Of a DNA stretch of 64,000 nt, positions 23,851-52,852 are shown in pieces; position 1 is the stretch's first letter, and each line of letters opens with the position of its first letter. A model generated the notes under the pieces. That model made no database searches, was not told the DNA's origin, and saw only the letters and a list, made by a program, of their open reading frames with translations. Source of the DNA: Rebecca billardiae RCC1528 (lineage: Eukaryota; Protista; Haptophyta); NCBI GenBank assembly GCA_965240325.2, contig OZ251228.1:1426001-1490000 (forward strand). The letters run 5' to 3'. The position numbers were made by a program, and so were the translations under genes.

Positions 23851-24241
23851 TAATTATGTCCAATAATGCAAGATGAAGATGATACCCGCATGCCAATAGC
23901 AGTTCGCCCCAAATGAAACTGTAGTACTACTCAGCTATAGACTGTGATGAATAGTGGTGCGCGCTCATGTACAGAAAAGTATAAGGGTATTGACGAAATA
24001 TATCCTCAGCGGGTGCGGCATCATCTAGATCTCCACCCGGAAAGGCCTTGGTGAAATGAAATATCCTACCGAGAGAGGTACATGTATCATTTAACGGCGG
24101 TGAATCGGATTCAGCGCGCACCTTTCGACGAATGACAAGCTGAGAGCAGGTTTGGTGGAAGGAATAGCGAGGATTCCTTAAGCACTCCACTGCCACCCAC
24201 ATCTTCTCACATCAAGATCACGAGGCGCGGCCGCGGTGCCG

Positions 24242-26701: not shown

Positions 26702-27107
26702 AGCCGCGTGCGTGCACGCCGGTGCTGGTGCGTCAGGCGTCGTCGGCGCGTCTCAGACTTATGAATAGCACAGTAGTCGTCGTCACACGCGGGGGCCTCC
26801 GGGCGCCTCCGCGCACGCGGCGCGCAGCGGAGTGCCGCTGAGCCCCCTGCCGCTGGCGCCGGCGGCCCGCCGTGCGCCTAGGGCTTGAGGTCGGCCGCCC
26901 GTCGTGGCCGCCTGCACTCTGTCGTCAGGCGCAGCGCCGCAGGGCCGGCCGCTGGCCCCGGAGACTATCGGTCGCAGTCCGACGGCGCCATCCTGAATAA
27001 GGCTGACCCGAATTAGGCTGACGGCTCTGAATAAATTAATGGCCAGCAACTATTTAGTAGTATTTAATAATATATATATACTACTTAGGCAATATCAATA
27101 ATCAGCG

Positions 27108-27108
<1 letters not shown>

Positions 27109-27147
<39 letters not shown>
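27109..27147. repeat. (TA)n microsatellite abutting the 3' end of the family-1 retroelement
   Basis: Pure TA run followed by GTGT and then the B2 repeat. Confidence 0.95.
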
Positions 27148-27151
<4 letters not shown>

Positions 27152-27155
<4 letters not shown>

Positions 27156-28212
27156 CCTCCTGCATGAAGAGCGACGCGACGCCATTGAGTATGGACGAAC
27201 ATCACCCACAGTCTGCGTGATGTGCATGACGAGGGCAGGTATTGCAGCATATATGCGAGCATGCAGCAAATGCCGATACACACCATGCCGAAATGGTGAT
27301 GTATAAATATATACTTGCGCGTGGTGGGGATTTGTCCCTGGCTGAACGGGAAGAGCGACTGAGCCGACGGTGCCAAAGCTGCGCGCAGACTGCGCCAGCG
27401 TGTGGCAGCAAGGTCCCTGGCTCAGGCAAGCGCAGCACTCACAGGCCTGACGACAAGGTTGTCAACCACAACGGAGGCTGCAGGGGCGGATGGCGGGTTT
27501 CGCAACGAGCACAAGCAAAGAACGCAGAGGAGATGGCGGGACCTCGGGCTTTGCAAATGCGCAGGCCGAAGCAGGGGCTGCCGAGAGATGAGCAGCTCGG
27601 CCCGAAAGGTCGTGTAACCGATGATCGAGCGAGCTCTGCTAGGTGGGCTGCTTGATATGAACTTTGGTAAGTTGCCACGCCGACTTAAGATGACCTTGGA
27701 TATGATCTCGAGCGCCGGATAGTGGAGAGGAGCGGGTACTTACAGAGGAGCCAGTGTGGTTGGCCGATATGAAAGGACCAGCGCCCGCCATGATGATGAT
27801 AAAGGATAGCTCCGTGGCCGATGAGCTCCGGAAATCGACTGCAACTACCTGCAGGACCTAGAAGACGATGGCGGCCCTTGTCCACCAGCTGCGCGTTGCC
27901 TTTCCAGCCTCCCGACACACTCGGTTATAACTCCGTTATAACGCCACGTGTCCTCCTGCATGAAGAGCGACGCGACGCCATTGAGTATGGACGAACATCA
28001 CCCACAGTCTGCGTGATGTGCATGCGAGGGCAGGTATTGCAGCATATATGCGAGCATGCAGCAAATGCCGATACACACCATGCCGAAATGGTGATGTATA
28101 AATATATACTTGCGCGTGGTGGGGATTTGTCCCTGGCTGAACGGGAAGAGCGACTGAGCCGACGGTGCCAAAGCTGCGCGCAGACTGCGCCAGCGTGTGG
28201 CAGCAAGGTCCC
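27152..28212 (-). repeat. Family-1 B1-A2-B2 terminal structure (265/266-bp direct repeats flanking a 450-bp A repeat plus spacer)
   Basis: 27152-27417 matches 27948-28212. The A repeat recurs inverted at 37567-38025. Confidence 0.93.
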
Positions 28213-28440
28213 GTTTGTGAGCAGGAGAGATCCCGTTGAGGATGAGGGCGCTGCTGAGAGATGATGGAGGCGGATGACACGGAGGAGGCCGGAGGTCTGT
28301 AGCGCAAGGTGGCACGTCCTCGTTTTTTTTTGTTTTTTTTTGAGGTTGCGTGCGTGTGCGCGCGCGCGCGCGCGTTGGGTAAGTAAGCGAGTTCGGGGGT
28401 GGGTGCTTGGGGACCTACAAAGGTCTGGCCCGCAAGGGCT

Positions 28441-28957
28441 GTGCCTACAAAGGCTGTGCCTACAAAGGTCACTGGTGTGCCTACAAAGGTCACGGATGTG
28501 CCTACAAAGGCTGTGCCTACAAAGGTCACTGGTGTGCCTACAAAGGTCACTGGTGTGCCTACAAAGGTCACGGGTGTGCCTACAAAGGCTGTGCCTACAA
28601 AGGTCACGGGTGTGCCTACAAAGGTCACGGATGTGCCTACAAAGGCTGTGCCTACAAAGGTCACTGGTGTGCCTACAAAGGTCACTGGTGTGCCTACAAA
28701 GGTCACTGATGTGCCTACAAAGGCTGTGCCTACAAAGGTCACTGGTGTGCCTACAAAGGTCACGGGTGTGCCTACAAAGGCTGTGCCTACAAAGGTCACG
28801 GGTGTGCCTACAAAGGCTGTGCCTACAAAGGTCACGGGTGTGCCTACAAAGGCTGTGCCTACAAAGGTCACGGGTGTGCCTACAAAGGCTGTGCCTACAA
28901 AGGTCACGGGTATGCCTGCAAAGGCTGTGCCCACAAAGGCTGGTGGCCTACAAAGGC
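28441..28957. repeat. Minisatellite of interspersed 15-bp (GTGCCTACAAAGGCT) and 21-bp (GTGCCTACAAAGGTCACKGRT) units, ~27 copies
   Basis: Directly visible tandem array between pol and B1. Confidence 0.95.
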
Positions 28958-29172
28958 TTGGCCGAAGCGTAGAGACGATGTTGCTGCAACTTGAGCGAGA
29001 GATGTGCGCCGCGTCGCCAGAGCGCGCCTCCCAGCGGAGCCGGCAACGCGTGCGCCGGCGCGAGGGCCGGATCCGGCTGCGAGCGCGACTGCAGCGCGAG
29101 CGCGACGGGCGGCGGCCGCCGCCAAACTGCGCCGCGCGACTGGCGAGCAGTCGATGCAGCGGCGTCCGTGTC

Positions 29173-32100
29173 TCAGCGACAAGCGCCCACCGCGGGCGGC
29201 GCGCCACGGACTCGCGAGCGCCGCCACACCGGCCCAGGGTTGCTGGCCTCGCCCACGCGCTCACCGCGCAGCGGCATGGGCGGATCGGCAGCGAGGACGA
29301 GCGGACGCGAGAGCAGCGCGACGAGCTCGTCAAGCAGCGCCTGCACGCGCACGACGGGCACTGCGAGCCACGTCGGGCGTAGGCCGAGCTGGGCGCACAG
29401 GCGCTCGAGGACGCCAAACTCGCCGCGGCTAGCTGCGTCCGCCAACGGGTTCATCTCGGAGAGGAGGAACTCCGAGTCGGCCAGCTCTGCGATCGCCCGC
29501 CATTCAGGGGCGTCGAGCAGCGCGAGGTGCGCGTGCTGCAGCAGCGGGGAGTGCGCGGACAGGTTGTGGAGGATGTGGTCGGTGACAGAGCTGTCGGTGC
29601 GGAGCCGGATGACGGCGCCTGCAATGCGCGGCGCGAAGATCAGCACGTTGGCGAACAGCGCGACGAACTCGAGCGCGACCACCGGCAGAGCGAGGTCCGA
29701 CGCGCGCAAGGGCAGGCTCCAGCAGAGCCCGTGGGCGTAGCCCCCCAGCGACGGCACGCGCGCGCCATCCTTGGCGGCGTCCGAGAAGAGCACGAACGCA
29801 GGCGGCGCCGCGGCCGGCAGGTGCCGGCGGGTCGAGGGGCCCGGCAGCGCGTTGGAGAAGAGCACGCCCGCGGTGGAGCGCAGGAGCTTGGCCCAGCGCG
29901 CGCACGCGGCGCGGAGCGTGGCGGTGATGGGCACCGGCCGCGCTGGGTGGCGGCCGAGCTCGCCGAAGTGCGTGTACAGGCCGTAGAAGAACGTGCGGTT
30001 CGCCGGCGTGAGCGGGCGGAAGTGCTCGAGCAGACCGACGAGCGCGCGAAAGGTAGAGAAGGGTACCGGCCTGCTCGCCAGCAAGTCGTCCAGGATGACG
30101 AGAGCGCGCAGGATCTTGGCCGGCGGCACCGCGAGGACGCCAGCGCAGACGACAAAGTCGCAGCCGAGCCAGAGCGCTGACTGGCCGATTTGGCGCTTCT
30201 CGGGGATGGCCATGAGCAGGCCGAGGCTGGTGGTGACGCGGTGCCAGACGGAGAGAAAGCGCACCGTTCTGTCCACGCCGACGATGGAGAAGTTGGTGTC
30301 GTCCGTGAAGCAGTCGCCGCTGAAGAGGCGCAGCTGGGGGCGCCGCGTGGTCACCGCGAGCGCACGGCGCTGCTCGATCCAGCTGCGCACAGCAGGGGGC
30401 GTCAGCGGGTCAGCGAGCATCGCCTCGAAGCGCGGCAGCTCCTCGTCGTCGAAGCACCGCGAGGCGATCTGCACGACGGTCGTGCTTAGGCGCTGCGCGA
30501 TGTTACTGCTGGGCGAGAGCCCAAAGCCGAGGCGCGACTCAGAGACGACGACGTGGCCGCCGGCGGCAACGCCCTCGCCGTCCGGCCGCAGCCAGAGGAG
30601 GCAGACGTTTGGCAGCTCGGCCGTTGCGACGCCGAGGTGGTTGAAGAAGTCGGCCACGTCGTCTGTGAGCGTGAGTATCGGCTCGCCAAACACGGCGGCG
30701 GCGTCGAGCAGGATCGCGTTGTCGTGCATCTTGCCGCCGACCGTGGGCTTGGCTTCGCGCGGCCACTTGCGCGGCGGCGCGCGCGGCAGGGTGGGCGTAA
30801 GACCCGCTGCGATCATCCGCTCGGCCGCGGCGGACGGGGCAGCCGCTGCTGGGCGGGGCACGTCGTGCCAGCCCGCGGCCGCGTCAGCGACCTCGTCGTG
30901 GAGACCGACAGCGACGTTGAGCGGGATGACAGGCACGCCAGCTGTGTCGACGAGCGCGCGGCGGGGCGCGCCGCCATCGGTCGTGCGGCGGTGCCGGTCC
31001 GGCTCGAGCTTGCGCGGCGTGGACCCCTGCGGGCTGAGCCGGCACGGGAGGAACGGGAAGTCGTCCCAGAAGCTGTACCAGCCGCGCGCCGCGAGGCGGA
31101 GGAGCTCCTTGTGCACGGAGGAGGCGGCCGCGCCGAGGGTGGTGAGGTGCGGCAGCAGCACGAGCTGGAGAGCCACATCGGCCTTGAACCGCACACCGTG
31201 GCGCACAAAGGAGAGCAGCTCGCGGTCGGGGAAGTCGGGACCGACGGCAGCTTCGAGGGCGTCCGGCATGAGCGTGCGCGACTCGAGCGGCGCCGAGAAG
31301 TCGAGCGGCAAGTACACGCCGTCCACCTTGCTCCGAAGGTCCCAGACGATGCCGCGGGCCTCCGGGTGGAAGAGGTCCTGGCCGATGGCGAGCGGCGCGT
31401 TGGTGCGCCGGGCGGCTGAGCCGAGCGAGAGGTACGCGCGCAGGTCGGCCTCCTCGCGGCGGCGCCAGCCCGCGACGAGCTCGAGCGCCGCGGGTAAGAG
31501 GATGTCAGCAACCGACCGCGGGCGGTACGAAGTCGCACGCTGCCGCCGCGGCGTCGGCACGTTGGTGTGAGGAGGGTCAAAGCGCGCCGACGTGGAGTCA
31601 AAGGGGAGCGCGGCGAGCGACCCGAGCGGCACGCGCATCGAGTGACCCTGCAGGGCGACAGGGATGCTGGAGCGGTCGGTGCGCACGCGATCGCCCCAGC
31701 CGGTGAGCGACTGGCCTTCCGTGGCCGGCAAGGAGGCGGCGCGTACAGCGATCATCGCCCGCAGAGCGGCGTCGGTCGCCTCGGCCGCGCGCGCCCCTTG
31801 CGCCCACGAGCGCTGCCTGGCGGCCGCCAGCGCCAGATCGCGCGCGGCCGAGGAACCGGCCGGACCCGTCGCGGCGAGAGGAGGCATGCGACGAGGGAGG
31901 ACGTCCACGAGCGCTGCACACGCAGCGGCGGCCGGCTCGTACAAGTCGGAGCCGGCGAACGCGCCCAAAGGGAACCACTCGCAGCCAGCCGCGAGCATCG
32001 GCGAGCGCGGCGGGCGCGTTCGGCTGGGAAGGGCCACGACGTGCGCCTCGCCGCCAAAGCGGCACTCGGCGCCGCGCAGGCGCGTGGCGTAGATGCCCGT

Positions 32101-32826
32101 CAGCGGCGGGCCACCCGTGAGCGCGCGTGCGACGAGAGACTCGGCCCGTGGGCACGCCTCTGAGCGGGGGCACGACGACGTGGATGAGCCCAGAAAGGAA
32201 GTCGGCGCGCCGCCGGGCGCGCGTCGACCGGCGAGGATGAGCGGCGCGTCGGGATCGTCGAGAGCGACGACGAGCGCCAGCAGCGAGGTGCTGGAGTCCG
32301 TGGATGCACTGAGCGTGCGTGTCGGCTCGACCCACGCCAGCCGCGATGGCGGCATGCCACCTCCGCTGCGCGCCGCAGGCGCGCGCAGCGGCGGCGGCGC
32401 ACCGGCGCCGGCAGATGTCGCCGCCTGGCGAGCCCGCGCGTCGCCGCCGACGCGAGGCGGCGGCAGCCGCGAGCGGTCGAGCAGCGCTGAGGCAGCCACG
32501 CCCGGCGCCAGCGAGGCGAGAGGCGTGGAGCCGCCCCGCCCCGCCGGCGCGAGCGGCGGCGGCGGCGCATCGCAGCCGACAGCCGGCGCGGTTGGGCGCG
32601 CGCGCTTGGCGCCGTCGACGCGGGGCGGCTGCAGCCGCGCGCGGGCAAGCAGCACGGCAGCACCCACGCCCGCCGTCACCGCCGCGACTGGCGAGGAGGC
32701 GGCAGATGACGAGTCGCCTGCGCGCGCAGCCTCAGCACGCAGCGACCGCGGCGAGGCAGCGGCGGCCAGCCCACCCGGCAAGGGAGCAGCAGGTGGTACC
32801 GCCGGCAGGGGCACCTGGGCGCTCAT
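29173..32826 (-). CDS. Pol: DIRS-type reverse transcriptase + RNase H, ending in a 2A-like GEASNPGP and a probably premature TGA
   Basis: RT motifs LTDDVADFFNHL, LGFGLSPSSNIAQRLS, FTDD and WLG. RNase H motifs FSDA, ALEF, TDS and NPLADAASRG. The first ATG (32826) overlaps the ORF1 stop as ATGA. Confidence 0.9.
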   Translation of the reverse strand: MSAQVPLPAVPPAAPLPGGLAAAASPRSLRAEAARAGDSSSAASSPVAAVTAGVGAAVLLARARLQPPRVDGAKRARPTAPAVGCDAPPPPLAPAGRGGSTPLASLAPGVAASALLDRSRLPPPRVGGDARARQAATSAGAGAPPPLRAPAARSGGGMPPSRLAWVEPTRTLSASTDSSTSLLALVVALDDPDAPLILAGRRAPGGAPTSFLGSSTSSCPRSEACPRAESLVARALTGGPPLTGIYATRLRGAECRFGGEAHVVALPSRTRPPRSPMLAAGCEWFPLGAFAGSDLYEPAAAACAALVDVLPRRMPPLAATGPAGSSAARDLALAAARQRSWAQGARAAEATDAALRAMIAVRAASLPATEGQSLTGWGDRVRTDRSSIPVALQGHSMRVPLGSLAALPFDSTSARFDPPHTNVPTPRRQRATSYRPRSVADILLPAALELVAGWRRREEADLRAYLSLGSAARRTNAPLAIGQDLFHPEARGIVWDLRSKVDGVYLPLDFSAPLESRTLMPDALEAAVGPDFPDRELLSFVRHGVRFKADVALQLVLLPHLTTLGAAASSVHKELLRLAARGWYSFWDDFPFLPCRLSPQGSTPRKLEPDRHRRTTDGGAPRRALVDTAGVPVIPLNVAVGLHDEVADAAAGWHDVPRPAAAAPSAAAERMIAAGLTPTLPRAPPRKWPREAKPTVGGKMHDNAILLDAAAVFGEPILTLTDDVADFFNHLGVATAELPNVCLLWLRPDGEGVAAGGHVVVSESRLGFGLSPSSNIAQRLSTTVVQIASRCFDDEELPRFEAMLADPLTPPAVRSWIEQRRALAVTTRRPQLRLFSGDCFTDDTNFSIVGVDRTVRFLSVWHRVTTSLGLLMAIPEKRQIGQSALWLGCDFVVCAGVLAVPPAKILRALVILDDLLASRPVPFSTFRALVGLLEHFRPLTPANRTFFYGLYTHFGELGRHPARPVPITATLRAACARWAKLLRSTAGVLFSNALPGPSTRRHLPAAAPPAFVLFSDAAKDGARVPSLGGYAHGLCWSLPLRASDLALPVVALEFVALFANVLIFAPRIAGAVIRLRTDSSVTDHILHNLSAHSPLLQHAHLALLDAPEWRAIAELADSEFLLSEMNPLADAASRGEFGVLERLCAQLGLRPTWLAVPVVRVQALLDELVALLSRPLVLAADPPMPLRGERVGEASNPGPVWRRSRVRGAPPAVGACR

Positions 32827-34388
32827 CGCCGCGCGCGCGGCAGCGCCCGCGGGCCCGGCGGCGACCGCCGCCGCGGACGCCGGCGAGAGAAGCGGGCAGC
32901 AATCCGCCGGCGGGCGCCCACATAGTGGCCCGTCGGCAAGCCAAAACCCGAGGGCCAAGCGTCGAGAGCATGCTGGGCGAGGTCGACGGCATCGAGCGAG
33001 TGCGCGCCGGCGCCGATCGCGCCGTGGCCGGGTTGGCCCGAACACGGGCAGCGCCGGATGGCCACGTCCGCGAGTGAGGGCTTGGCCCTGCCGTCGGCGC
33101 GCAGCTTCGGGAACCGCGTGGCCACGACCGGCAGGCACGGGTCGACGTGCATCACACTCACGTACGCCGCCGAGAAGGAGCTCAGGCGGAAGAGGCCCAA
33201 GTTGTCCGAGAGCAGCCCGATGCCGAAGCAGTCGTGCGTCTCGGAGACGACATAGCCGACAGGGGGGCCGAAAGGCTTGGTGTTGAGGATGGTCACCTGC
33301 ACGTCCGAGCCGTCGCTCGGCGCAGCGGCAGCAGGCCCGCGCGCCAACTGGCGCTGCTTCTTGCTCGGCGGGGGTTGCAGCTGCGCGCGAGCACGCCCCG
33401 GAGCGGTGGGCGACGGCTGCGGTTGCCCGCGCAAGGGGTTGGCCGGGGTGCTCGGGCCGGGGCCTGCCGACTGGCCGGCGCCCTGGCTGGCGCGGAGAGC
33501 GAGCATCCGGTCGACAAACGCCGCGCTCTGGTTCCAGGTGATCATGGTCGCCTGCGTGGAGCGACAGGCCTCGCGGATGGTGGCCAGCACGACCGACGAC
33601 GGGTCGAGGAACGGCAGCTCAGGAATGCGCGCGAGCGGGTTGGGGTCGGCGAGGGCGACGCCAAAGCGCGTCTCGAGGTCAGCGAGCATCTCATTGACCA
33701 GAGCGACAGCAGCCGTCACCGCCAGGCCGATGCTGACGGCGGCCTGCAGTTCGACGAGCTTGCCAAAGAAGGAGTCGATCTCGGAGACGCCGACGTAGCC
33801 GAACAGCTTGATCGCCGCATCCTCCACGAGATGGAACATCCGGAGGTCTGTCAGCGTGTCCGAGAGCAGCGCCTCGAGCGACACGAACGGCGTCAGCGCG
33901 CAGTAAACGGAGTGCTGCGAGAGGGCGGCGGTGAGCGCGTGCGAGAGCTCGACGATGCCCAGCGCCGTGAACTTGCCCGCCACGAGCGAGGAGCAGAGCT
34001 TGGATTCGAGCGTGAATGTCATCGACGCCTGCAGCTCGGGGACGTCCTCCCTGAGTCGCGCGGACAAGGCGCGCGCCAGAGGGCGGCCCCGCGCGGCCAT
34101 CGAGAGCGTGATGAGCTGGAGGTTGCCGAGCTGCGAGGACGGGCTGGAGCCGGCGAGGACGCGGCGGATGAGGGTGAAACTCGACTGCAGCAGGAGGATC
34201 TCGCGCTGCCCAGCCGGGCTGGAGGCCGCCTTGAGGTCGAGCTCGCGCCACTCCGGGTTGTCCAGGAGAAGCGAGGCCGAGCCGGCAGCAGAGGAGCGCG
34301 GTTGCCGCCGAGGCCCGAGCTCTGCGCAGCGGAGCCGCCATCGCCAGAGCCGAGGCCGACGAGCCTGGCGCGGACAAGCTCGAACGTG
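32823..34388 (-). CDS. Gag-like ORF1 of the retroelement, 5' disrupted
   Basis: Helical ORF directly upstream of pol with a C-terminal C...CPC...H...H cluster (DPCLP...RRCPCSGQPGHGAIGAGAH). The 5' end runs into a T18 tract and a foldback. Confidence 0.65.
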   Translation of the reverse strand, partial: HVRACPRQARRPRLWRWRLRCAELGPRRQPRSSAAGSASLLLDNPEWRELDLKAASSPAGQREILLLQSSFTLIRRVLAGSSPSSQLGNLQLITLSMAARGRPLARALSARLREDVPELQASMTFTLESKLCSSLVAGKFTALGIVELSHALTAALSQHSVYCALTPFVSLEALLSDTLTDLRMFHLVEDAAIKLFGYVGVSEIDSFFGKLVELQAAVSIGLAVTAAVALVNEMLADLETRFGVALADPNPLARIPELPFLDPSSVVLATIREACRSTQATMITWNQSAAFVDRMLALRASQGAGQSAGPGPSTPANPLRGQPQPSPTAPGRARAQLQPPPSKKQRQLARGPAAAAPSDGSDVQVTILNTKPFGPPVGYVVSETHDCFGIGLLSDNLGLFRLSSFSAAYVSVMHVDPCLPVVATRFPKLRADGRAKPSLADVAIRRCPCSGQPGHGAIGAGAHSLDAVDLAQHALDAWPSGFGLPTGHYVGARRRIAARFSRRRPRRRSPPGPRALPRARR

Positions 34389-34447
34389 TTTTTTTTTTTT
34401 TTTTTTAACCGCCACGCCGCTGCCAGCGCCCGCTGTCGTTCGTTGCT

Positions 34448-34613
34448 CTCGCGGGCGCCCTCTCGACCTCGGGCAGCAGCTCAACCGCCACGCCGCTGCC
34501 AGCGCCCGCTGTCGTTCGTTGCTCAAATCCCTATTTGAGCAACGAACGACAGCGGGCGCTGGCAGCGGCGTGGCGGTTGAGCTGCTGCCCGAGGTCGAGA
34601 GGGCGCCCGCGAG
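34448..34613. repeat. Perfect foldback palindrome, 81-bp stem with 4-nt loop, built from the family-2 B repeat
   Basis: 34448-34528 is the reverse complement of 34533-34613, loop CCCT. A further partial inverted copy lies at 34407-34448. Confidence 0.95.
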
Positions 34614-35523
34614 TCGTCAGTCACTGAGCAAGGTCGATTAAGGCTGATGGCTCGCTGACACTGCAGTGCTTCCATATCCGCCAGAGGCCGAGGGTGGGCG
34701 GGCGGGCAAACGATGAAGCGTGCGGGTTGACGCGACAGCGGCGAGAGCAAGAGACCATTGCATGAGGGGCGACGCGGCGAAGACAGATGATGACGTCGCG
34801 CCGCCGAACGATCAGGCGGGGAGCCGGGCCACACAGACAGCCAGCGACCTTACCGAGCAGAGGGGCTGCGGCGACTGCGGTGCACCTCCTGCAGCGGAGC
34901 GTGCACCCGGCAGTGCCCGATGCAGGCGATTCCCTTGCCCAGCTCGGCGCCTTCGTCGTGAGCAGCCCCATGGCGCCCCCGAGAGTGAAGCCTGATCGAT
35001 CCGATGTGAGCGGTAACCAACCGAGTCCTGCAGGTGCGCCGCTGTGGGCCAGATTGGCAGCGCACCAGGACTCCTGCGCGCGGCGGTGCGCACAGGACAA
35101 CGCAGGAATGCCGTGCGAGCCGGATTCTTGGCGTCGCTCATAGACACTCAGTTATAGGTTCCCTATAACGCCACGTCTAGCCACTCCGCCATGCCCGGCT
35201 CGTACAAGGCGTCGGGTACGAATGGACTCTGGAGCTGGATGGTCGCGGCGCGCGGCGTCGTGGAGTAGACAGACCACGATGATCAATCATGGAACGATCA
35301 GGTTAGCTATGTTGGGATTTGAGCAACGAACGACAGCGGGCGCTGGCAGCGGCGTGGCGGTTGAGCTGCTGCCCGAGGTCGAGAGGGCGCCCGCGAGTCC
35401 CGTTTATAAGTTGGAGCGGGCGTCCAAGTAGTCGTTGATGAATCCCGTTTAGAAATAGAAGAGACGAGGACTGCGCGGCCGCGCGCGCACGATCGATCGC
35501 GACGCGCGGCGAGCAGACACGCG
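34533..35523 (-). mobile_element. Truncated copy of the family-2 miniature split-repeat element (partial B2, spacer, A2, B1, partial internal)
   Basis: Close match, with scattered substitutions and indels, to ~38270-39273. A/B junction at 35174|35175. Confidence 0.9.
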
Positions 35524-35879
35524 ATATAGACCGCGTTCCGCGGTCCTTTTCCGTAGAACCAACGCAGTTGGGGGCCCGCGGCGCAGTGGTTGAGAATGAG
35601 ACCGTGACGTCGTCAATCCGCACGGTCTGGCGTCTGCCTGGCAGTCAGACAGGCCGAGCCGCACCGTCTCGGAGAGTGAGTGAGAGTCAGACCCGTCCGT
35701 CGGACTCGCGGCGCGTGAATGGGCGCGCCGACGGCCAAGGGTGGCACGGGACACCAGCGGACGGGCCGCGCGGGGAAGCGGGGCGGCGCGCGCGCAGGGC
35801 GAGAGGCGCGGACGGGCCGCCGCGCGGGGAAGCGGGGCGGCGCGCGTGCAGGGCGAGAGGCGCCGCGCGGCGCGGGCCG

Positions 35880-36560
35880 GCGCGTGCGCGCGCGCGCGCG
35901 CACCTGCTTGAGGTGCTCTCGCTGCGCCATGCGCTCGACGAAGGGCCGCTGGTCGCTCAGCCGGCGCGCCTCGGGCCGGCATAGCGAGAGCGCGCGCCAC
36001 TGCTGCCCGCCCACGCTGCGCAGCCACGCGCAGACCGAGCGGAGCTCGGGGTGGGACGAAGCGAGTGGCGTGTCGCGCCCGCCGCCAGGCGCACGCGTGC
36101 CCTGCTCCGCACCGCGCCGCCGTGCTCGCCCGCCGCCTGCTCCGCCGCGTCGGCCTCGAGGATGGCGGCGGCCAGCGGCAGGCTGAGCGGCGCGCGCTCG
36201 CCCACCGTAGCTTCGAGGGCCGTCCACACCTGCTCGAGCTGCTGCAGGGCGTGGACAAGGGCAGCGCGCGCGCCCAGCGCATCCGTGCCGCGTGACGCAG
36301 CGCGTCGAGCTCGGCGTCTCGCTTCGCCAGCTCGGCGCCCAGCGCCTCTGCGCGCACGCGTCGAGCTCGGCGTCGCGCTTTGCCAGCTCGGCGCCCAGCG
36401 CCTTCACGCGCACGTGCTCGTGTATCTGCGCGCGCACGGCCTGCGCGCCGCCGCCCATCTGCGCGCGCAGACTCGGACTCGTTGCGGCTGGCTGCTAGGG
36501 AGTGCTAGGGTGCGCGCCGCGTAGTCGATGGCCAAGGCCTGCAGCCAGCGCGCCTGCACC
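35880..36560 (-). pseudogene. Degenerate gene fragment with HMG-box-like remnant
   Basis: HPELRSV...GQQWRALS...QRPFVERMAQRE resembles HMG helices 2-3. Frames are broken, there is an internal ~55-bp tandem duplication (36301-36412), and an intron-like CG-rich tract follows. Confidence 0.35.
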
Positions 36561-37260
36561 GAGAAAAGAAGGCGCGGCACGCGCGCTATAACCCAGTCCA
36601 CGCAGACACGCGAGCGCGTGCTGGAGCGGCGCGCCGGGGCAACCGTCCACGTCGGCCGCGCGGGAGCCGCAGGTACTCTCGCGTGCCTGCGCGACGCAGC
36701 GCGCACGCACAGCGAAACGGGCGCGGGGTAGAATTCAGGAGAGCGCCGCCGCCCGCGCACCACCCCACCGAGAGTGCGCACATGCGCACGCCACGACATG
36801 GCACGACATGGCGCACGAGTCGGACGCAACGCCCGACAGACAGAAGCCTTCGAAAATCCGCGCGCGCCCGCAAACGCGGCCGCGCGCGCGGGCGGGCGCG
36901 CGGGCGTGCGTGCGCCACCCGCGCGGGAGGCGCCCGCGGCCGCGCGGGCGGCGCGCGCGCGGCGCGCGCTCCGCGCGGTCGTCCACACCGATGGCGGTCG
37001 ATCGAGGGCGACGAGGGCTCGCCCCGTTTTTGGAGCGAGCGCGTGCCGCGCGCCCCCTGGCCCCCAACTGGGTATGATAATACCCACAATTACCCAAAAT
37101 GACCTTATGCCCCCAACACCGTTATGATAGCGAGCCAATGTACTGATATGATAGACTGAACGAGAGTACCCACAATTACCCAATCTATCATTTTACTATG
37201 GTCACACTAGAACGAGAGTCTACCCACAAAATTTACCCAGCCTGGCACACTTGGGCGTGG

Positions 37261-37560
37261 GTTTCGTTGATTCCTCTGTTCACTATTCAAGACGGCGGAC
37301 GCGACCTTTTTCGACGCTAATCCATGTGTTAGGAGGTCTCAAAAAATCGAAACTCGGTCTCCCCACTCTGGAAAACACCGCCCCGTCCCTTTTTTCTTTG
37401 ATCAAAGATCTTAATTTGAAACGTGGTTCGGGCCCGCTGGTGCGGGCTCCACGCTGCGCGCTCCGCCCTGCACCGCGGGCCATAACGACGTGGTATGCAA
37501 CGGGCAAGCGTCAGGCTCAGAGTGCAGCAGACACATAGAATATGCGTCCGCGCCTACTTC
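37261..37560. repeat. Dispersed repeat family, copy 1 (related copies inverted at 46814-47100 and 58615-58716)
   Basis: The reverse complement of 37380-37483 aligns with 46814-46935 (ATGGCCCGCGGTGCAGGGCGGAGCGCGCAGCGTGGAGCCCGCA...CACGTTTCAAA...AAAGGGACGGG). The reverse complement of 37460-37556 aligns with 58615-58716. Confidence 0.8.
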
Positions 37561-37566
37561 CAATAT

Positions 37567-38022
37567 GTGGCGTTATAACGGAGTTATAACCGAGTGTGTC
37601 GGGAGGCTGGAAAGGCGACGCGCAGCTGGTGGACAAGGGCCGCCATCGTCTTCTAGGTCCTGCAGGTAGTTGTAGCCGATTTCCGGAGCTCATCGGCCAC
37701 GGAGCTATCCTTTATCATCATCATGGCGGCCGCTGGTCCTTTCATATCGGCCAACCACACTGGCTCCTCTATAAGTACCCGCTCCGCTCCACTATCCGGC
37801 GCTCGAGATCATATCCAAGATCATCTTAAGTCGGCATGGCAACGTATTACCAAAGTTCATCAAGCAGCCCACCTATCAGAGCTCGCTCGATCATCGGTTA
37901 CACGACCTTTCCGCTTTCGGGCCAAGCTGCTCATCTCTAGGCCACCCCTGCTTGCCTGCGCATCGCCATCAGCAAAGCCCGAGGTCTCATCTCCTCTGCG
38001 TTCCTTGCTTGTGCTCGTTGCG

Positions 38023-38025
<3 letters not shown>
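37567..38025 (+). mobile_element. Solitary family-1 A repeat (element 5' end), inverted relative to the RT element
   Basis: Reverse complement of 27498-27947 with roughly 14 substitutions and 6 indels by eye. Begins CAATAT|GTGGCGTTATAACGGAGTTATAAC. Confidence 0.92.

Positions 38026-38092
<67 letters not shown>
38026..38092. repeat. (TA)n microsatellite abutting the 3' end of the family-2 concatemer
   Basis: Pure TA run of ~33 units. Confidence 0.95.
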
Positions 38093-38095
<3 letters not shown>

Positions 38096-41000
38096 TAGCC
38101 ACTCCGCCATGCCCGGCTCGCACAAGGCGTCGGGTACGAATGGACTCTGGAGCTGGATGGTCGCGGCGCGCGGCGTCGTGGAGTAGACAGACCACGATGA
38201 TCAATCATGGAACGATCAGGTTAGCTATGTTGGGATTTGAGCAACGAACGACAGCGGGCGCTGGCAGGGATTTGAGCAACGAACGACAGCGGGCGCTGGC
38301 AGCGGGTGAGCGGCGTGGCGGTCGAGCTGCTGCCCGAGGTCGAGAGGGCGCCCGCGAGTCGTCAGTCACTGAGCAAGGTCGATTAGGGCTGATGGCTCGC
38401 TGACGCTGCAGTGCTTCCATATCCGCCAGAGGCCGAGGGCGGCCGGGCGGGCAAACGATGAAGCGTGCGGGTTGACGCGACAGCGGCGAGAGCAAGAGAC
38501 CATATTGCATGAGGGGCGACGCGGCGAAGACAGTAGATGATGTCGTCGCGCCGCCGAACGATCAGGCGGGGAGCCGGGCCACACAGACAGCCAGCGACCT
38601 TACCGAGCAGAGGGGCTGCGGCGACTGCGGTGCACCTCCTGCAGCGGAGAGTGCACCCGGCAGTGCTCGATGCAGGCGATTCCCTTGCCCAGCTCGGCGC
38701 CTTCGTCGCGAGCAGCCCCATGGCGCCCCCGAGAGCGAAGCCTGATCGATCCGATGTGAGCGGTAACCAACCGAGTCCTGCAGGTGCGCCGCTGTGGGCC
38801 AGATTGGCAGTGCACCAGGACTCCTGCGCGCGGCGGTGCGCGCGGGACAACGCAGGAATGCCGTGCGAGCCGGATTCTTGGCGTCGCTCATAGACACTCA
38901 GTTATAGGTTCCCTATAACGCCACGTCTAGCCACTCCGCCATGCCCGGCTCGCACAAGGCGTCGGGTACGAATGGACTCTGGAGCTGGATGGTCGCGGCG
39001 CGCGGCGTCGTGGAGTAGACAGACCACGATGATCAATCATGGAACGATCAGGTTAGCTATGTTGGGATTTGAGCAACGAACGACAGCGGGCGCTGGCAGC
39101 GGCGTGGCGGTTGAGCTGCTGCCCGAGGTCGAGAGGGCGCCCGCGAGTCCCGTTTATAAGTTGGAGCGGGCGTCCAAGTAGTCGTTGATGAATCCCGTTT
39201 AGAAATAGAAGAGACGAGGACTGCGCGGCCGCGCGCGCACGATCGATCGCGACGCGCGGCGAGCAGACACGCGTCAGAGTGCGCCGCACCCGCGCGACGC
39301 ACGGGCGCGAGGCGAGCGCGTATCTCAAACGATGAAGCGTGCGGGTTGACGCGACAGCGGCGAGAGCAAGAGACCATATTGCATGAGGGGCGACGCGGCG
39401 AAGACAGTAGATGATGTCGTCGCGCCGCCGAACGATCAGGCGGGGAGCCGGGCCACACAGACAGCCAGCGACCTTACCGAGCAGAGGGGCTGCGGCGACT
39501 GCGGTGCACCTCCTGCAGCGGAGCGTGCACCCGGCAGTGCTCGATGCAGGCGATTCCCTTGCCCAGCTCGGCGCCTTCGTCGCGAGCAGCCCCATGGCGC
39601 CCCCGAGAGCGAAGCCTGATCGATCCGATGTGAGCGGTAACCAACCGAGTCCTGCAGGTGCGCCGCTGTGGGCCAGATTGGCAGTGCACCAGGACTCCTG
39701 CGCGCGGCGGTGCGCGCGGGACAACGCAGGAATGCCGTGCGAGCCGGATTCTTGGCGTCGCTCATAGACACTCAGTTATAGGTTCCCTATAACGCCACGT
39801 CTAGCCACTCCGCCATGCCCGGCTCGCACAAGGCGTCGGGTACGAATGGACTCTGGAGCTGGATGGTCGCGGCGCGCGGCGTCGTGGAGTAGACAGACCA
39901 CGATGATCAATCATGGAACGATCAGGTTAGCTATGTTGGGATTTGAGCAACGAACGACAGCGGGCGCTGGCAGCGGCGTGGCGGTTGAGCTGCTGCCCGA
40001 GGTCGAGAGGGCGCCCGCGAGTCCCGTTTATAAGTTGGAGCGGGCGTCCAAGTAGTCGTTGATGAATCCCGTTTAGAAATAGAAGAGACGAGGACTGCGC
40101 GGCCGCGCGCGCACGATCGATCGCGACGCGCGGCGAGCAGACACGCGTCAGAGTGCGCCGCACCCGCGCGACGCACGGGCGCGAGGCGAGCGCGTATCTC
40201 AAACGATGAAGCGTGCGGGTTGACGCGACAGCGGCGAGAGCAAGAGACCATATTGCATGAGGGGCGACGCGGCGAAGACAGTAGATGATGTCGTCGCGCC
40301 GCCGAACGATCAGGCGGGGAGCCGGGCCACACAGACAGCCAGCGACCTTACCGAGCAGAGGGGCTGCGGCGACTGCGGTGCACCTCCTGCAGCGGAGAGT
40401 GCACCCGGCAGTGCTCGATGCAGGCGATTCCCTTGCCCAGCTCGGCGCCTTCGTCGCGAGCAGCCCCATGGCGCCCCCGAGAGCGAAGCCTGATCGATCC
40501 GATGTGAGCGGTAACCAACCGAGTCCTGCAGGTGCGCCGCTGTGGGCCAGATTGGCAGTGCACCAGGACTCCTGCGCGCGGCGGTGCGCGCGGGACAACG
40601 CAGGAATGCCGTGCGAGCCGGATTCTTGGCGTCGCTCATAGACACTCAGTTATAGGTTCCCTATAACGCCACGTCTAGCCACTCCGCCATGCCCGGCTCG
40701 CACAAGGCGTCGGGTACGAATGGACTCTGGAGCTGGATGGTCGCGGCGCGCGGCGTCGTGGAGTAGACAGACCACGATGATCAATCATGGAACGATCAGG
40801 TTAGCTATGTTGGGATTTGAGCAACGAACGACAGCGGGCGCTGGCAGCGGCGTGGCGGTTGAGCTGCTGCCCGAGGTCGAGAGGGCGCCCGCGAGTCCCG
40901 TTTATAAGTTGGAGCGGGCGTCCAAGTAGTCGTTGATGAATCCCGTTTAGAAATAGAAGAGACGAGGACTGCGCGGCCGCGCGCGCACGATCGATCGCGA

Positions 41001-42420
41001 CGCGCGGCGAGCAGACACGCGTCAGAGTGCGCCGCACCCGCGCGACGCACGGGCGCGAGGCGAGCGCGTATCTCAAACGATGAAGCGTGCGGGTTGACGC
41101 GACAGCGGCGAGAGCAAGAGACCATATTGCATGAGGGGCGACGCGGCGAAGACAGTAGATGATGTCGTCGCGCCGCCGAACGATCAGGCGGGGAGCCGGG
41201 CCACACAGACAGCCAGCGACCTTACCGAGCAGAGGGGCTGCGGCGACTGCGGTGCACCTCCTGCAGCGGAGCGTGCACCCGGCAGTGCTCGATGCAGGCG
41301 ATTCCCTTGCCCAGCTCGGCGCCTTCGTCGCGAGCAGCCCCATGGCGCCCCCGAGAGCGAAGCCTGATCGATCCGATGTGAGCGGTAACCAACCGAGTCC
41401 TGCAGGTGCGCCGCTGTGGGCCAGATTGGCAGTGCACCAGGACTCCTGCGCGCGGCGGTGCGCGCGGGACAACGCAGGAATGCCGTGCGAGCCGGATTCT
41501 TGGCGTCGCTCATAGACACTCAGTTATAGGTTCCCTATAACGCCACGTCTAGCCACTCCGCCATGCCCGGCTCGCACAAGGCGTCGGGTACGAATGGACT
41601 CTGGAGCTGGATGGTCGCGGCGCGCGGCGTCGTGGAGTAGACAGACCACGATGATCAATCATGGAACGATCAGGTTAGCTATGTTGGGATTTGAGCAACG
41701 AACGACAGCGGGCGCTGGCAGCGGCGTGGCGGTTGAGCTGCTGCCCGAGGTCGAGAGGGCGCCCGCGAGTCCCGTTTATAAGTTGGAGCGGGCGTCCAAG
41801 TAGTCGTTGATGAATCCCGTTTAGAAATAGAAGAGACGAGGACTGCGCGGCCGCGCGCGCACGATCGATCGCGACGCGCGGCGAGCAGACACGCGTCAGA
41901 GTGCGCCGCACCCGCGCGACGCACGGGCGCGAGGCGAGCGCGTATCTCAAACGATGAAGCGTGCGGGTTGACGCGACAGCGGCGAGAGCAAGAGACCATA
42001 TTGCATGAGGGGCGACGCGGCGAAGACAGTAGATGATGTCGTCGCGCCGCCGAACGATCAGGCGGGGAGCCGGGCCACACAGACAGCCAGCGACCTTACC
42101 GAGCAGAGGGGCTGCGGCGACTGCGGTGCACCTCCTGCAGCGGAGCGTGCACCCGGCAGTGCTCGATGCAGGCGATTCCCTTGCCCAGCTCGGCGCCTTC
42201 GTCGCGAGCAGCCCCATGGCGCCCCCGAGAGCGAAGCCTGATCGATCCGATGTGAGCGGTAACCAACCGAGTCCTGCAGGTGCGCCGCTGTGGGCCAGAT
42301 TGGCAGTGCACCAGGACTCCTGCGCGCGGCGGTGCGCGCGGGACAACGCAGGAATGCCGTGCGAGCCGGATTCTTGGCGTCGCTCATAGACACTCAGTTA
42401 TAGGTTCCCTATAACGCCAC
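38093..42420 (-). mobile_element. Family-2 non-autonomous split-repeat element as a concatemer: (A-internal-B)x4 - A2 - spacer - B2
   Basis: 874-bp units at 38925-39798, 39799-40672, 40673-41546 and 41547-42420 (B 225 bp, internal 176 bp, A 473 bp). A2 38452-38924; B2 38093-38360. Flanks are TATAT|GT and CCAC|ATATAT. No credible coding capacity. Confidence 0.9.
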
Positions 42421-42833
42421 ATATATTCACTGTGCTGACTCTGACACGTTTTTAAAATATACTAATAATAAGCCGGCCAGCGGCGCGGTCCGAGCCACAA
42501 TGCCGAGCGGACGCCGCCGGATCGCGCCACTGAGTCACAGTGAAGGTGCCTGCTAATGACCAGAAGTATTCATCTCCAACCCTATCCGCGGCATTATGCA
42601 GCAGGGACGCCAGTGATAGGGCGCCGTCTGACTTGGCACTGACGTGGTCTGCCGCGCGCGCAATGCGGCGGGCTGGCCGCTGCCAGCCAGGGGCTGCTAG
42701 TCGCCACCTCCGGGCCGTACCGTGCAATGCCAACAGAGCCGCGAGCGGCTCTTCCATGCCACCGATCAGGAGTTTTGGTGATTGACGACGACGACGACGA
42801 CCGTCACAATCGCTGCACCGGCATCGCCTCCGT

Positions 42834-43399
42834 TCAAGCTGGGTTTGAGATCGTCACGTTGACCGTGAGGGGCACGTGGTAGCCCGAGAAGTTGGATTGT
42901 GGCGCAGCAGGTTGCGTGATGTACTCCAGCGACAGGTTCGGAGAGTGCTGCCATTCCTGATTCTCGATCGTCGCCAAGTCCATGCCATCTCCAGAGACCA
43001 TGGCGCCGACGGAAAAATAGACGTCATCCACCTGCACGGCCGTGGTACGCAAATTAGTGGCGCAAGCATGAGGACGCGTGAGCTCAAGCACAGGGGCCGC
43101 GTGTGCAGATGCGACATGCGGAGGCGGCGGCGCGACGGCCGGGGCACACGCACGTTCGGCTGCTTGTACAAGACCGCCGAGCAGGTGTAAAACTGATCGA
43201 CCCCTTCGTTGCGGAGGTTGGCGAACCCAACCTCCTGGAAGTCTGCGGAGGCCCCCGCCGGCAGGGTGTCGGGCATGTCCATGGACATCGAGCCTCCTGA
43301 TGCGGGGTTGCACGCGCTGAAGCCGCCTTTGAAGTCGATGGAGCTCTTGTTGACGAGATGCACGTTCGTCACAAACGGGATGAGGTAGGGCTCGGTCAT
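42834..43399 (-). CDS. Small beta-rich hypothetical protein (147 aa); exons 43399-43154, 43031-42834
   Basis: Two overlapping ORFs join in frame via a GT..AG intron (43153-43032). Coding-like GC3. Confidence 0.65.
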
Positions 43400-43531: not shown

Positions 43532-44636
43532 CAAGGGTAGTAAGGGTGAGCAACTCCGCTGGCGACAGCCGCGAAGGTCGGCAGCCCTCTGTTTGCCGCG
43601 AGCGGAGCGGAGCGAGTGCTATCAGCGGCGGAGGGCGCTGAGGCCGCGCACGGCGTGAGGCGCGGCGTCGGCCGAGTCGGTCCGCGGAGGATGCGCGGCG
43701 CTCGGCCCGCTGCGCAGCGGCAGTGCGCCTCACTTTGCCCCGAGCGCCGTCCGCCGCGTCGCCTCCTTCCCGCCTTGGAGCAGCACGCATGTGCGCGCCG
43801 CCACCTTGAAGGCGGCACGGGCTTGCTCAGACGACCGCGCGCGCGTGGCGCGCGACTTGGTCGGCTGCGCGCGCGCGCCGCCGCGGTGCAAGGTAGCGCC
43901 GCCGCATGCGCGCGCCGTGCCAGCGCGAGAGCGTGTGCGCGGACCTGAGTGCGACCTCACACACATGTCGAATGCTGCTTGGCATCCGACTTGCGGACTG
44001 ACGGGAAGCTGGAAAAGACAGCGGCGTGAGTGTTGGTACCATCGATGCGGAGCCTTAGCGTCCACTTGCATTCGTGCTGAGAAGGAACAGACAAGACTAG
44101 GCCTTCGTCCTGGGTATCCAATGTCACTCAACACCTCGCTGATCGACCCGACGAGTGCCAGCGTGAGGCACAGCAAATCATTCGTGAGAGCAAGCAGACA
44201 AGCGAGCACTACGCTCATGAGATGGCCGTGAGCAAAGGCTCGCGCGGGCACGGCGCGCGCATGCGGCGGCGCTACCTCGCACCGCGGCGGCGCGCGCGCG
44301 CAGCCGACCAAGTCGCGCGCCACGCGCGCGCGGTCGTCTGAGCAAGCCCGTGCCGCCTTCAAGGTGGCGGCGCGCACATGCGTGCTGCTCCAAGGCGGGA
44401 AGGAGGCGACGCGGAGGACGGCGCTCGGGGCAAAGTGAGGCGCACTGCCGCTGCGCAGCGGGCCGAGCGCCGCGCATCCTCCGCGGACCGACTCGGCCGA
44501 CGCCGCGCCTCACGCCGTGCGCGGCCTCAGCGCCCTCCGCCGCTGATAGCACTCGCTCCGCTCCGCTCGCGGCAAACAGAGGGCTGCCGACCTTCGCGGC
44601 TGTCGCCAGCGGAGTTGCTCACCCTTACTACCCTTG
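43532..44636. mobile_element. Non-autonomous foldback DNA transposon, P-superfamily (Galileo-like): 398-bp TIRs, 7-bp TSD
   Basis: 43532-43929 is the reverse complement of 44239-44636 with ~3 mismatches. Termini CAAGGG...CCCTTG. GGTGAGC is duplicated at 43525-43531 and 44637-44643. Confidence 0.9.
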
Positions 44637-44747
44637 GGTGAGCACCGGACGCACGACGCAGTCGTTCGGCAGTCGCCACGTGAACGCTGCCGGACCGCCT
44701 CGTCGGCCAAGAATCTCCGGCTGGCTGTGTCAATCGTGCGCATCGCG

Positions 44748-46414: not shown

Positions 46415-46451
<37 letters not shown>

Positions 46452-46652
46452 GTGGACGCGGTCGACGGGCTCGCCGAGGCCATCCGCAACTTCGCCGGCG
46501 GCGTGGTGCTCGTCTCGCACGACTTCCGGCTGATCGACCAGGTCGCCAAGGACATCTGGCTGTGCAGCGGCAAGAGCGTCAAGCGATGGGACGGGAGCAT
46601 CCAGGAGTACAAGCAGAAGCTCGCCAAGAAGATGGGCGCGCTCACGGTATGA
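44748..46652 (+). CDS. ABC-F family ATPase (ABCF2/Arb1-like)
   Basis: Two NBDs (GENGSGKS / MSGGWRMR / LLLDEPTNHLD and GPNGCGKST / LSDGQKSR / LLLDEPTNHLD), no TM segments, Lys-rich N-terminus. Confidence 0.95.
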
Positions 46653-46813
46653 CGAGCTGGGCGGGCGGCTCGCCCGGGGCGCCCGTGGGCGTGGCGGGGC
46701 GCAATAAAATTCCCGGGACGCCGAGACTCACGTCACGATTTAACAGTCACGGACTTACGTGTAGACCTATCAGCATGATGATGGCCGACATACAGTGATG
46801 TCTCATTCGTCTC

Positions 46814-47100
46814 ATGGCCCGCGGTGCAGGGCGGAGCGCGCAGCGTGGAGCCCGCAGTGCGGGCCCTAATCACGTTTCAAAATATATTTAAATATATATC
46901 TTTGATGATCAAGAATATATATATAAAGGGACGGGAGACGACGAATTTAATAATTTATTCAGGCCCCTGGAGGGCCAGATTGGCCAGATGGAGGAGATGA
47001 CGACCGAGTTAAATATAAATACGAATTTTCAATTTTGAGATGACCGCGCATAGCGAGACATCCATATAGTACTCGAGCAGAAAAAACCGCGCCCGGCTCT
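46814..47100. repeat. Dispersed repeat family, degenerate copy 2
   Basis: Colinear with the reverse complement of 37290-37483 but interrupted by AT-rich insertions. Confidence 0.7.

Positions 47101-52804: not shown

Positions 52805-52852
<48 letters not shown>

Follow-up and report, generated by a model that had tools for sequence, protein, structure and literature searches.

Ngaro- and PAT-like retrotransposons reportedly carry split direct repeats in the order A1-[ORFs]-B1A2B2 (ORF, open reading frame), an arrangement that Goodwin and Poulter are said to have described in 2004, and TOC1 is likewise said to be a repeat-bounded element that depends on proteins supplied in trans. To our knowledge, the signals that tyrosine-recombinase retrotransposons use for replication and integration are almost unknown, and experiments on them have been made with DIRS-1 only. 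Split-repeat elements of this type and their non-autonomous derivatives are themselves already known (PMC9940879, PMC8547959). Here we describe a 64-kb window of the genome of the haptophyte Rebecca billardiae RCC1528 (contig OZ251228.1, positions 1,426,001 to 1,490,000; all coordinates below are those of the window), which we studied by self-comparison over 26.5-43.5 kb and by direct reading of the sequence. We conclude, with a probability of roughly 0.7, that retrotransposon derivatives of the tyrosine-recombinase type (DIRS order) form a nest at nucleotides 27152-42420, in an AT-rich (TA)n island between two host genes. The nest contains an element that encodes a reverse transcriptase (RT), called family 1, and a non-coding element, called family 2. 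New here are an RT-encoding member that carries no recombinase, a miniature partner whose only common feature with it is a co-varying structure at the junction, the clade-wide conservation of this structure, and the association with a TA microsatellite. We know of no earlier report of microsatellite targeting in the DIRS order, our literature search having been inconclusive, and such targeting, if true genome-wide, would be without known precedent in that order.

SymbioDIRS-Dnmt3 of Symbiodinium has an A-coding-B-A-B organization, an RT that does not align with the Pfam seeds, and a DNA methyltransferase (DNMT) within pol, and its recombinase occupies an ORF of its own (de Mendoza et al. 2018, PMC5890265). 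Family 1 has the same repeat organization and an RT that likewise escapes Pfam, and its relatives encode a C5 DNA methylase N-terminal to RT-RNase H together with a recombinase, either fused or in a separate ORF. However, family 1 itself has neither methylase nor recombinase, and the two systems are likened here by description. With Ngaro and PAT elements, as presented in the portion of the Cafeteria study on which we draw (PMC8547959), the locus shares split direct repeats, an ORF1 followed by RT-RNase H, solo repeat units, and, as far as the TA/AT flanks allow it to be judged, the lack of an obvious target duplication. The arrangement A1-internal-B1-A2-B2 can be followed here from its tail in the window and from an A1 on an independent contig, and it is complete in one relative. 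According to the same portion of that study, the RT and RNase H of the Cafeteria Ngaros are found by Pfam and a recombinase is present; in contrast, Pfam is blind to the element described here, the recombinase is absent, and a spacer of 80-91 bp separates A2 from B2. That portion makes no mention of TA-tract targeting or of a junction stem-loop (PMC8547959).

TOC1 of Chlamydomonas is a non-autonomous DIRS retrotransposon (PMC9940879), as family 2 probably is in type. However, at 1.66 kb, of which 176 bp are internal, family 2 is by far the smaller of the two; it forms a tandem array and shares only about 31 nt and a folded structure with the nearby RT-encoding family. For DIRS-1, experiments have shown that an internal copy of the joined ends is indispensable, the cDNA is single-stranded, and the junction nucleotides have been proposed to define targets (PMC7192593). 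The likeness to the present elements lies in an internal sequence that stands for the joined ends and serves to rebuild them at full length, a role that B1/A2 would take in split-repeat elements. The differences are that the repeats of DIRS-1 are inverted and both of its ends are matched by a complementary region of 88 nt, whereas the repeats here are direct, and that an extra short intramolecular stem is present here, formed between the 3'-terminal nucleotides of B and nucleotides ~29-39 of A.

The pol ORF of family 1 (29173-32355 on the minus strand; 1060 amino acids, P0001) was not recognized through sequence-based domain searches. Pfam returned no match for any long ORF of the region, pol included, and searching PDB sequences with the pol protein alone was equally fruitless. 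Homologues at 32-42% identity comprise 1165 cluster representatives (E <=1e-3), none of which (0/1165) has a precomputed Pfam RT domain, and no protein more than 42% identical to pol is found among 1.8 billion representatives. Family 1 nests in a large unannotated clade whose RT goes undetected by Pfam, and more than 1000 protein clusters are thereby missed by domain-based annotation.

An AlphaFold model of pol, computed on a 15-sequence alignment, reached a mean pLDDT (predicted local distance difference test) of 75. When this model was compared with the PDB using Foldseek, the top matches were the RTs of Moloney murine leukemia virus (MMLV), human endogenous retrovirus K (HERV-K), foamy virus, cauliflower mosaic virus (CaMV), Ty3, and human immunodeficiency virus (HIV), with E values from 1e-11 to 1e-7. 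In addition, five of the 15 homologues give a weak RVT_1 match, the family profile weakly matches Ty3 RT/RNase H in the PDB, and the aspartates of RT motifs A and C and of RNase H form invariant alignment columns and are present in the window protein. Based on the Foldseek matches, the weak profile matches, and the invariant aspartates, we assign family 1 pol as an RT-RNase H of the retroviral or long terminal repeat (LTR) type, an identity confirmed at the level of predicted structure. An earlier note on this window, made from the sequence, had named the same enzyme; its claim is borne out through the structure model, and not through Pfam or the PDB sequence search.

The pol ORF ends about 45 amino acids past RNase H, and Pfam finds no Dam-like methyltransferase downstream of RNase H in pol. 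Roughly 250 residues preceding the RT fingers (residues 1-250 of a 782-residue query; 29176-31521) are conserved clade-wide, with the signature PLxIGQxxFxPxARGIVWDLR...; this block is partly well modeled and matched no annotated domain. ORF1 is a different case. Pfam does not match it, it does not resemble the ORF1 proteins of the relatives, a search of 5.8 billion proteins yielded no homologue, and its single-sequence model (pLDDT 35) is unusable. The description of ORF1 as "gag-like" in the earlier note therefore derives from its position only.

The relatives of pol point to the DIRS order. Pfam Phage_integrase matches lie downstream of pol in the relative loci L002 and L003 and inside the polyproteins P0016, P0018, and P0028, and a hidden Markov model (HMM) built from the relatives' recombinases detects the domain in 89 stored proteins. 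Among the fetched relative loci that have sequence downstream of pol, eight of eight encode the recombinase. A tree of 118 RT-RNase H segments places family 1 within a 26-row clade with a Shimodaira-Hasegawa-like (SH-like) support of 98, and the recombinase is in the same ORF in 15 of these 26 rows. A C5 DNA methylase stands N-terminal to RT in 26 stored proteins of relatives. Judging from the recombinase in all eight relative loci, the family 1 lineage appears to belong to the DIRS order, with a window copy that is devoid of that gene: no tyrosine recombinase is present in any frame of the 64-kb window (clade-specific HMM and tblastn), and no C5 methylase is found there in any frame with an HMM built from the relatives. 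Thus, RT-encoding members of the clade can be without an integrase.

The architecture of the relatives is also informative. A B1-A2-(spacer)-B2 tail is present in L002, L014, L016, and L033, and L016 is complete, with A1...B1-A2-spacer-B2. The split-direct-repeat layout proposed earlier therefore stands, in that both families have the layout of tyrosine-recombinase (DIRS-order) elements and kin with the same tail encode the recombinase. In contrast, the proposal of a "two-component system" does not hold as stated. Because the recombinase is absent here and present in eight of eight relative loci, such a system would have no integrase and could at most be an arrangement of three parties. The GC content of family 1 is about 72%, compared to 47-62% in the relatives. 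Several metagenome contigs (L003/L021, L025, L032, L043, and L062) have identical ends, as would result from collapsed split repeats or from circles.

Family 1 occupies 27152-34388 on the minus strand, and in element orientation its 3' end reads B1-A2-spacer-B2, followed by ACACA(TA)n. B1 (265 bp, 27948-28212) was delimited by self-comparison, and B2 (266 bp, 27152-27417) is 99.6% identical to it; between them lie A2 (450 bp, 27498-27947) and an 80-bp spacer (27418-27497) that opens, in element orientation, with the C-rich CCCGCC. The internal/B1 boundary (28213-28245), where a polypurine tract would sit, holds a purine-rich AACGGGAT ... AAACGGGAC segment, and tandem repeats of 21/36 bp (28380-28985) fill the greater part of the 960-bp interval from the pol stop codon to B1. 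The model does not account for the ACACA that separates B2 from (TA)n. In the GC- and Ala-rich sequence that separates ORF1 from the conserved portion of pol, 32363-32698 is a 168-bp tandem duplication whose halves are 76% identical.

The window copy is 5'-truncated at 34389, and no A1 of family 1 lies within the window. Contig L004, which stems from an independent run of sequencing, is 99.7% identical to 34388-28909 and extends 1084 bp further upstream. It opens with the last 30 nt of A (the same as the last 30 nt of A2), which are followed by a 35-nt leader and the ATG of an ORF1 of 828 amino acids. From this start we derive the order A1-ORF1-pol, with A1 known from L004 alone, and a full length of about 8.7 kb that comprises A1, ORF1, pol (RT-RNase H), the tandem repeats, B1, A2, the spacer, and B2. 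Comparison with L004 reveals that the ORF1 remnant of the window (32922-34388, minus strand) has lost its first 340 codons and its stop codon and has a 1-bp deletion at 34298. The 5' truncation, the frameshift, and the lost stop codon mean that the window copy of family 1 is itself dead. Nor can this copy be taken as the autonomous partner in the system proposed in the earlier note, as it has neither a tyrosine recombinase nor a methylase in the window. The pol genes of L004 and of the window differ at four sites, and all four differences are synonymous, which we count as selection on pol.

The alternative that fares best treats family 1 as an ordinary autonomous family: its intact copies would encode a tyrosine recombinase in the interval from the tandem repeats to B1, and the window copy would simply be an internally deleted, 5'-truncated corpse; we give this account close to an even chance. 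The gene order in L003, where 26-bp tandem repeats (6365-6684) lie between pol and the recombinase ORF, can be set against the order in the window, where pol and the 21/36-bp repeats are followed by B1. L004-L006, three independent short-read contigs that reproduce 28883-34388 at 99.7-99.9%, all end inside the tandem repeats, and the window copy is damaged in other respects as well. However, the lack of any protein more than 42% identical to pol among the 1.8 billion representatives means that no recombinase-bearing sibling has been sampled, and the exclusively synonymous differences in pol fit a lineage that is still propagating in its present form. P0016, P0017, and P0023, the top pol matches from Logan runs, were considered as a close sibling of this kind and rejected, since they come from other samples and do not carry the signal described below. 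Tandem repeats directly after pol occur in a member with a recombinase (L003) and in the one without (the window); their position is kept and their sequence is not.

Family 2 has the complete terminal architecture of a split-repeat element and no coding capacity, i.e., it is a non-autonomous member of this type. Its 1.66 kb are laid out as A, 176 bp of internal sequence, B, A, a 91-bp spacer, and B, and it lies on the minus strand. Self-comparison delimits B1 (225 bp, 38925-39149), A2 (473 bp, 38452-38924), and B2 (38093-38360), the last being a 225-bp B enlarged by a 35-bp internal tandem duplication, also reported by Tandem Repeats Finder (TRF), and by an 8-bp insert. The spacer (38361-38451) opens with CCCGCC in element orientation, and the internal region (39150-39325) has no homologue. 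The module sizes given in the earlier note for both families, and its layout of the family 1 3' end, were recovered. Its statement that family 2 has no ORFs holds only in part: each unit contains a sense ORF of 223 amino acids, which has no homologue among 5.8 billion proteins, and we take the element to be non-coding.

Between families 1 and 2, neither the A and B bodies nor the spacers align above shuffled controls, in agreement with what had been claimed for A and B. The parts that had been named as common are also confirmed, namely the first 31 nt of A, the AC/GT junction, and AAACGGGA, a purine-rich motif beside B1 in both families. The sole significant match in A covers nucleotides 1-31, beginning at position 1 in both families, with 25 of 31 nucleotides and all of the first 11 identical. 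The junction string TATAACGCCAC/GT occurs eight times, compared to 0.49 expected, and only at A boundaries. Next to B1, the motif CTCC..CT.A.AAACGGGAC is identical at 16 of 20 positions between the families and is anchored at the internal/B1 boundary, and a second AACGGGAT lies 25-45 nt upstream in both. The two spacers have the same opening, CCCGCC.

Folding of 51 nt across B1/A2 in each family gave the same two-helix structure spanning the B/A junction. In family 1 (27914-27952, minus strand), the fold and the pair counts have the last five nucleotides of B and the first G of A pairing with nucleotides 28-33 of A, and in family 2 (38891-38929, minus strand) the same two helices are formed, with TAGAC/GTCTA outside and GTTATAGG/CCTATAAC inside. 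The complete outer stem is GACACG/TGTGTC in family 1 and TAGACG/TGTCTA in family 2. It encloses an 8-bp hairpin with a 3-nt loop, which reads GTTATAAC-GGA-GTTATAAC in family 1 and GTTATAGG-GAA-CCTATAAC in family 2. All 14 stem pairs are standard in both families, and each of the four variable pairs is changed on both sides (four of four, and no one-sided change), compared to 0-1 in slid controls. Thus, what the two families share is, as far as sequence can indicate, a two-helix structure across the B/A junction.

Relatives whose sequence is otherwise unrelated (L002, L014/15, L016, L018, and L032/33/47) have a comparable arrangement, in which the last 6 nt of B are complementary to nucleotides 30-39 of A, around an inner hairpin. 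The pairing is GTAGAA/TTCTAC in L014/15, L018, and L032/33/47; it is ATAGAA/TTCTAT in L002, a compensatory change, and GTAGAA/TTCTGC, with one G-T pair, in L016. Shuffled A sequences reach the B-end matches of these relatives in 1-41 of 2000 trials. The end of B in the clade reads (T)AGA(A/C), and the junction core is a 4-bp palindrome, AATT in the relatives and ACGT in families 1 and 2. The relatives also have a purine-rich motif, AAA(T/C)GGGA(G/C), at the internal/B1 boundary and a C-rich motif directly after A2, at the start of the spacer. In L016, the AATT core is found at both outer ends (181-188 and 9415-9422), which fits an exchange in a short core common to element and target and agrees with the proposal made for DIRS-1 (PMC7192593). 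We infer that the shared structure and motifs may be elements of a common replication and integration cycle. The junction structure is a concrete, testable candidate for a circle-junction or recombinase-recognition signal.

Mobilization of family 2 in trans by family 1, much as the earlier note had proposed, is plausible but unproven, because both families need a recombinase that is not seen here. Signals of the same kind are conserved clade-wide, so family 2 could equally have inherited them from an autonomous parent of its own that has been lost. This second alternative, for which the odds are somewhat less than even, holds that family 2 is an internal-deletion derivative of an unseen element with family-2-type A and B, that it shares the signals by common descent, and that it is mobilized by that parent. 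Non-autonomous retroelements normally retain the entire terminal repeats of their parent, yet families 1 and 2 cannot be aligned in their A and B bodies. In addition, the same kinds of cis signal recur in distant clade members, so that sharing them does not imply parasitism, and family 1 has no recombinase to offer in any case. Against descent from a separate parent stand the identity of the first 11 nt, and of 25 of 31 nt, of A in the two families, and the absence from the window of any autonomous element of family-2 type. Moreover, relatives with 33-40% pol identity have quite different junctions, such as GAA/TTGGAG, which argues that the two families share a specific and recent signal.

One possible cycle can be drawn by analogy with DIRS-1. 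The element would be transcribed from A1 to B2 and reverse transcribed by an RT of the family 1 type. The internal B1/A2 copy of the joined ends would then act like the internal complementary region of DIRS-1 and restore the circle junction, while the junction stem might hold the 3' end of B beside the 5' end of A or form the recombinase site. Finally, a tyrosine recombinase supplied in trans would exchange the AC/GT of the junction with AT/AT in a TA tract, and no target duplication would be made. The outer junctions observed, ...AT/GTGGCG and ...GAC/AT..., fit this proposed exchange. A crossover inside the TATA of the hairpin arms was also considered as a basis for TA targeting and was rejected, since GTGGCG remains complete at integrated 5' ends and the 3' ends terminate in ...GAC. 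Supply in trans, and the roles of helper and helped element, belong to this proposal too.

A further reading is a three-tier parasitism within the clade, a scheme that we regard as tentative and, on balance, unlikely. In it, an RT element that has shed its recombinase and a 1.66-kb non-coding element would both rely on a third, recombinase-encoding element, and all three would be recognized through a minimal junction signal composed of the co-varying two-helix structure, the purine-rich motif, and the C-rich motif. The change of core from AATT to ACGT and the TATA-containing hairpin arms would accompany specific integration into TA microsatellites.

The flanks of the elements bear on the last point. 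The window contains only two (TA)n tracts, as identified by TRF, and each adjoins an element end. One of them, (TA)19.5 (27109-27147), is followed by GTGT(G) and, in all, 27109-27151 adjoins the 3' end (B2) of family 1. The other, (TA)34 (38025-38092), is common to the B2 end of family 2 and the end of a solo A of family 1. This solo A (37567-38024, plus strand) is inverted relative to the main copy, is 91.6% identical to A2, and is the only other A of family 1 in the window; its ends are precise (AT/GTGGCG ... GCGAAA/(TA)n), its two flanks being AT and (TA)34. The family 2 array is bordered at its 5' (A1) end by ATATAT (42421-42426) and then by ~50 bp of AT-rich sequence. Every visible element terminus (n = 5) thus abuts a TA/AT run, all in one island, which accords with the TA-repeat target named in the earlier note. 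Any target-site duplication would be unrecognizable within such TA/AT repeats.

The nest is flanked by ordinary host genes, which encode a cyclic nucleotide monophosphate (cNMP)-binding protein (ending at 26701) and an ABC-F ATPase (from 44634). The window has a GC content of about 68%, and the sequence just outside the nest is AT-rich (27040-27108 and 42421-42475). The whole 15 kb looks like the product of successive insertions into a single AT-rich TA island.

Several points weigh against the interpretation developed here. First, the apparent TA targeting comes from one locus, with five termini in one island, and the long TA tracts are confined to the B2 side. Second, the covariation is drawn from two sequences only, and 24 of 500 shuffles reach it, with a floor of about 1 in 16; the outer stem of families 1 and 2 is by itself not significant (shuffled A sequences match in 220 and 325 of 2000 trials), and the energies of the junction folds are unremarkable (z from -0.5 to -3.5). 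Third, the 11-mer GTGGCGTTATA junction is absent from the 11 relative loci scanned, where no helper recombinase with this junction was found, and a scan of Joint Genome Institute (JGI) metagenomes also revealed no helper with the junction signal of families 1 and 2. Fourth, the RT tree was built without named DIRS, PAT, Ngaro, and VIPER references. Finally, the model leaves two structures unexplained. One is the solo A, since recombination between split repeats would leave A-spacer-B rather than A alone, and the other is the T18/palindrome junction between the two families described below.

In element orientation, the family 2 array reads [A-int-B]x4 and then A-spacer-B. The 874-bp tandem repeats span 38452-42420, and beyond the first unit there are three further A-int-B units and a terminal A1 (39326-42420 in all, with A1 at 41948-42420; minus strand), the units being 99.9-100% identical to one another. 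Unequal crossing-over between A1 and A2 or between B1 and B2 is the likeliest route to such an array, and entry of a circle at a resident B/A junction, mediated by a recombinase, is less likely. A head-to-tail dimer of a full-length, recombinase-encoding relative is present in L018 (4062-8102 and 13975-18015), where the second unit starts exactly at the B/A junction, so tandem arrays occur in the clade outside this window too.

A second, partial copy of family 2 (34533-35523, minus strand) is 97.3% identical to 38270-39273. It consists of a truncated B2 (83 bp), a spacer (34616-34706), an A (34707-35174), a B (35175-35399), and 124 of the 176 bp of internal sequence. The two copies seen in the window lie 3 kb apart and are 2.7% diverged. 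Two pieces of family 2 B in the sense orientation (34408-34531, plus strand) form a 166-bp palindrome together with 34533-34613, which lies in the truncated B2 of the partial copy. Across 34389-34613, the truncated end of family 1 is joined to a run of 18 T (34390-34407) and then to these B pieces, a junction that looks like the outcome of template switching or fold-back.

These features also bear on the possibility that family 2 is an immobile local 874-bp satellite that arose from duplicated terminal-repeat debris, an explanation we consider improbable. Its two copies do lie within 8 kb, the array units are nearly identical, and no dispersed copies were found, either in a protein search with the family 2 ORF or in a 31-mer metagenome scan. 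However, the array ends exactly at the start of A and the end of B, against AT/TA runs, and it has a complete A-int-B-A-spacer-B organization with a spacer of its own. Furthermore, the partial copy, with its 2.7% divergence and unique spacer, is the tail of a separate element rather than an array unit, and the junction structure has been kept through compensatory changes. The metagenome scan used a degenerate 31-mer common to both families, which gave no exact-scan match in the JGI metagenomes. A ribozyme or other known RNA was also considered as the basis of the tandem family and was rejected; an Rfam scan of 26500-43000 (E up to 1) detected no self-cleaving ribozyme and no hammerhead, and apart from hairpin- or miRNA-like matches that fell by chance on the palindrome and on the TA tracts, it returned nothing.

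Least credible of all, to the point of being very improbable, is an assembly artefact affecting the region, especially the array and the palindrome (34448-34613): near-identical repeats and perfect palindromes are classic sites of misassembly, but the three independent short-read contigs match 28883-34388 at 99.7-99.9%, one end of the array is marked by a unique B2 variant and spacer and the opposite end by an AT-rich flank, and the relative L018 has the same kind of head-to-tail repeat.

Several further features of the window can be recorded. Its host ORFs are very long and uninterrupted (3032-8377, 11629-13425, 24236-26701, 44634-46652, 51008-56047, and 62524-63927), and their products are a WD40 protein with an ion-transport domain, BBS7, the cNMP-binding protein, the ABC-F ATPase, a Slo/BK channel, and an ankyrin protein. 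Based on these uninterrupted ORFs and the flagellar BBS7, the host is an intron-poor, GC-rich, flagellated eukaryote. A scan for bacterial-type promoters and terminators was empty and of no relevance here. Local GC content dips to 0.56 at 16001-18000, compared to about 0.68 elsewhere. Within the nest, a 2-kb stretch (35524-37566) has no Pfam match and is not accounted for in origin. Sequences about 90% identical to its last 140 bp (37415-37555) occur at two other sites in the window, 46808-46881 and 58615-58684, which indicates that a further family of short dispersed repeats is present.

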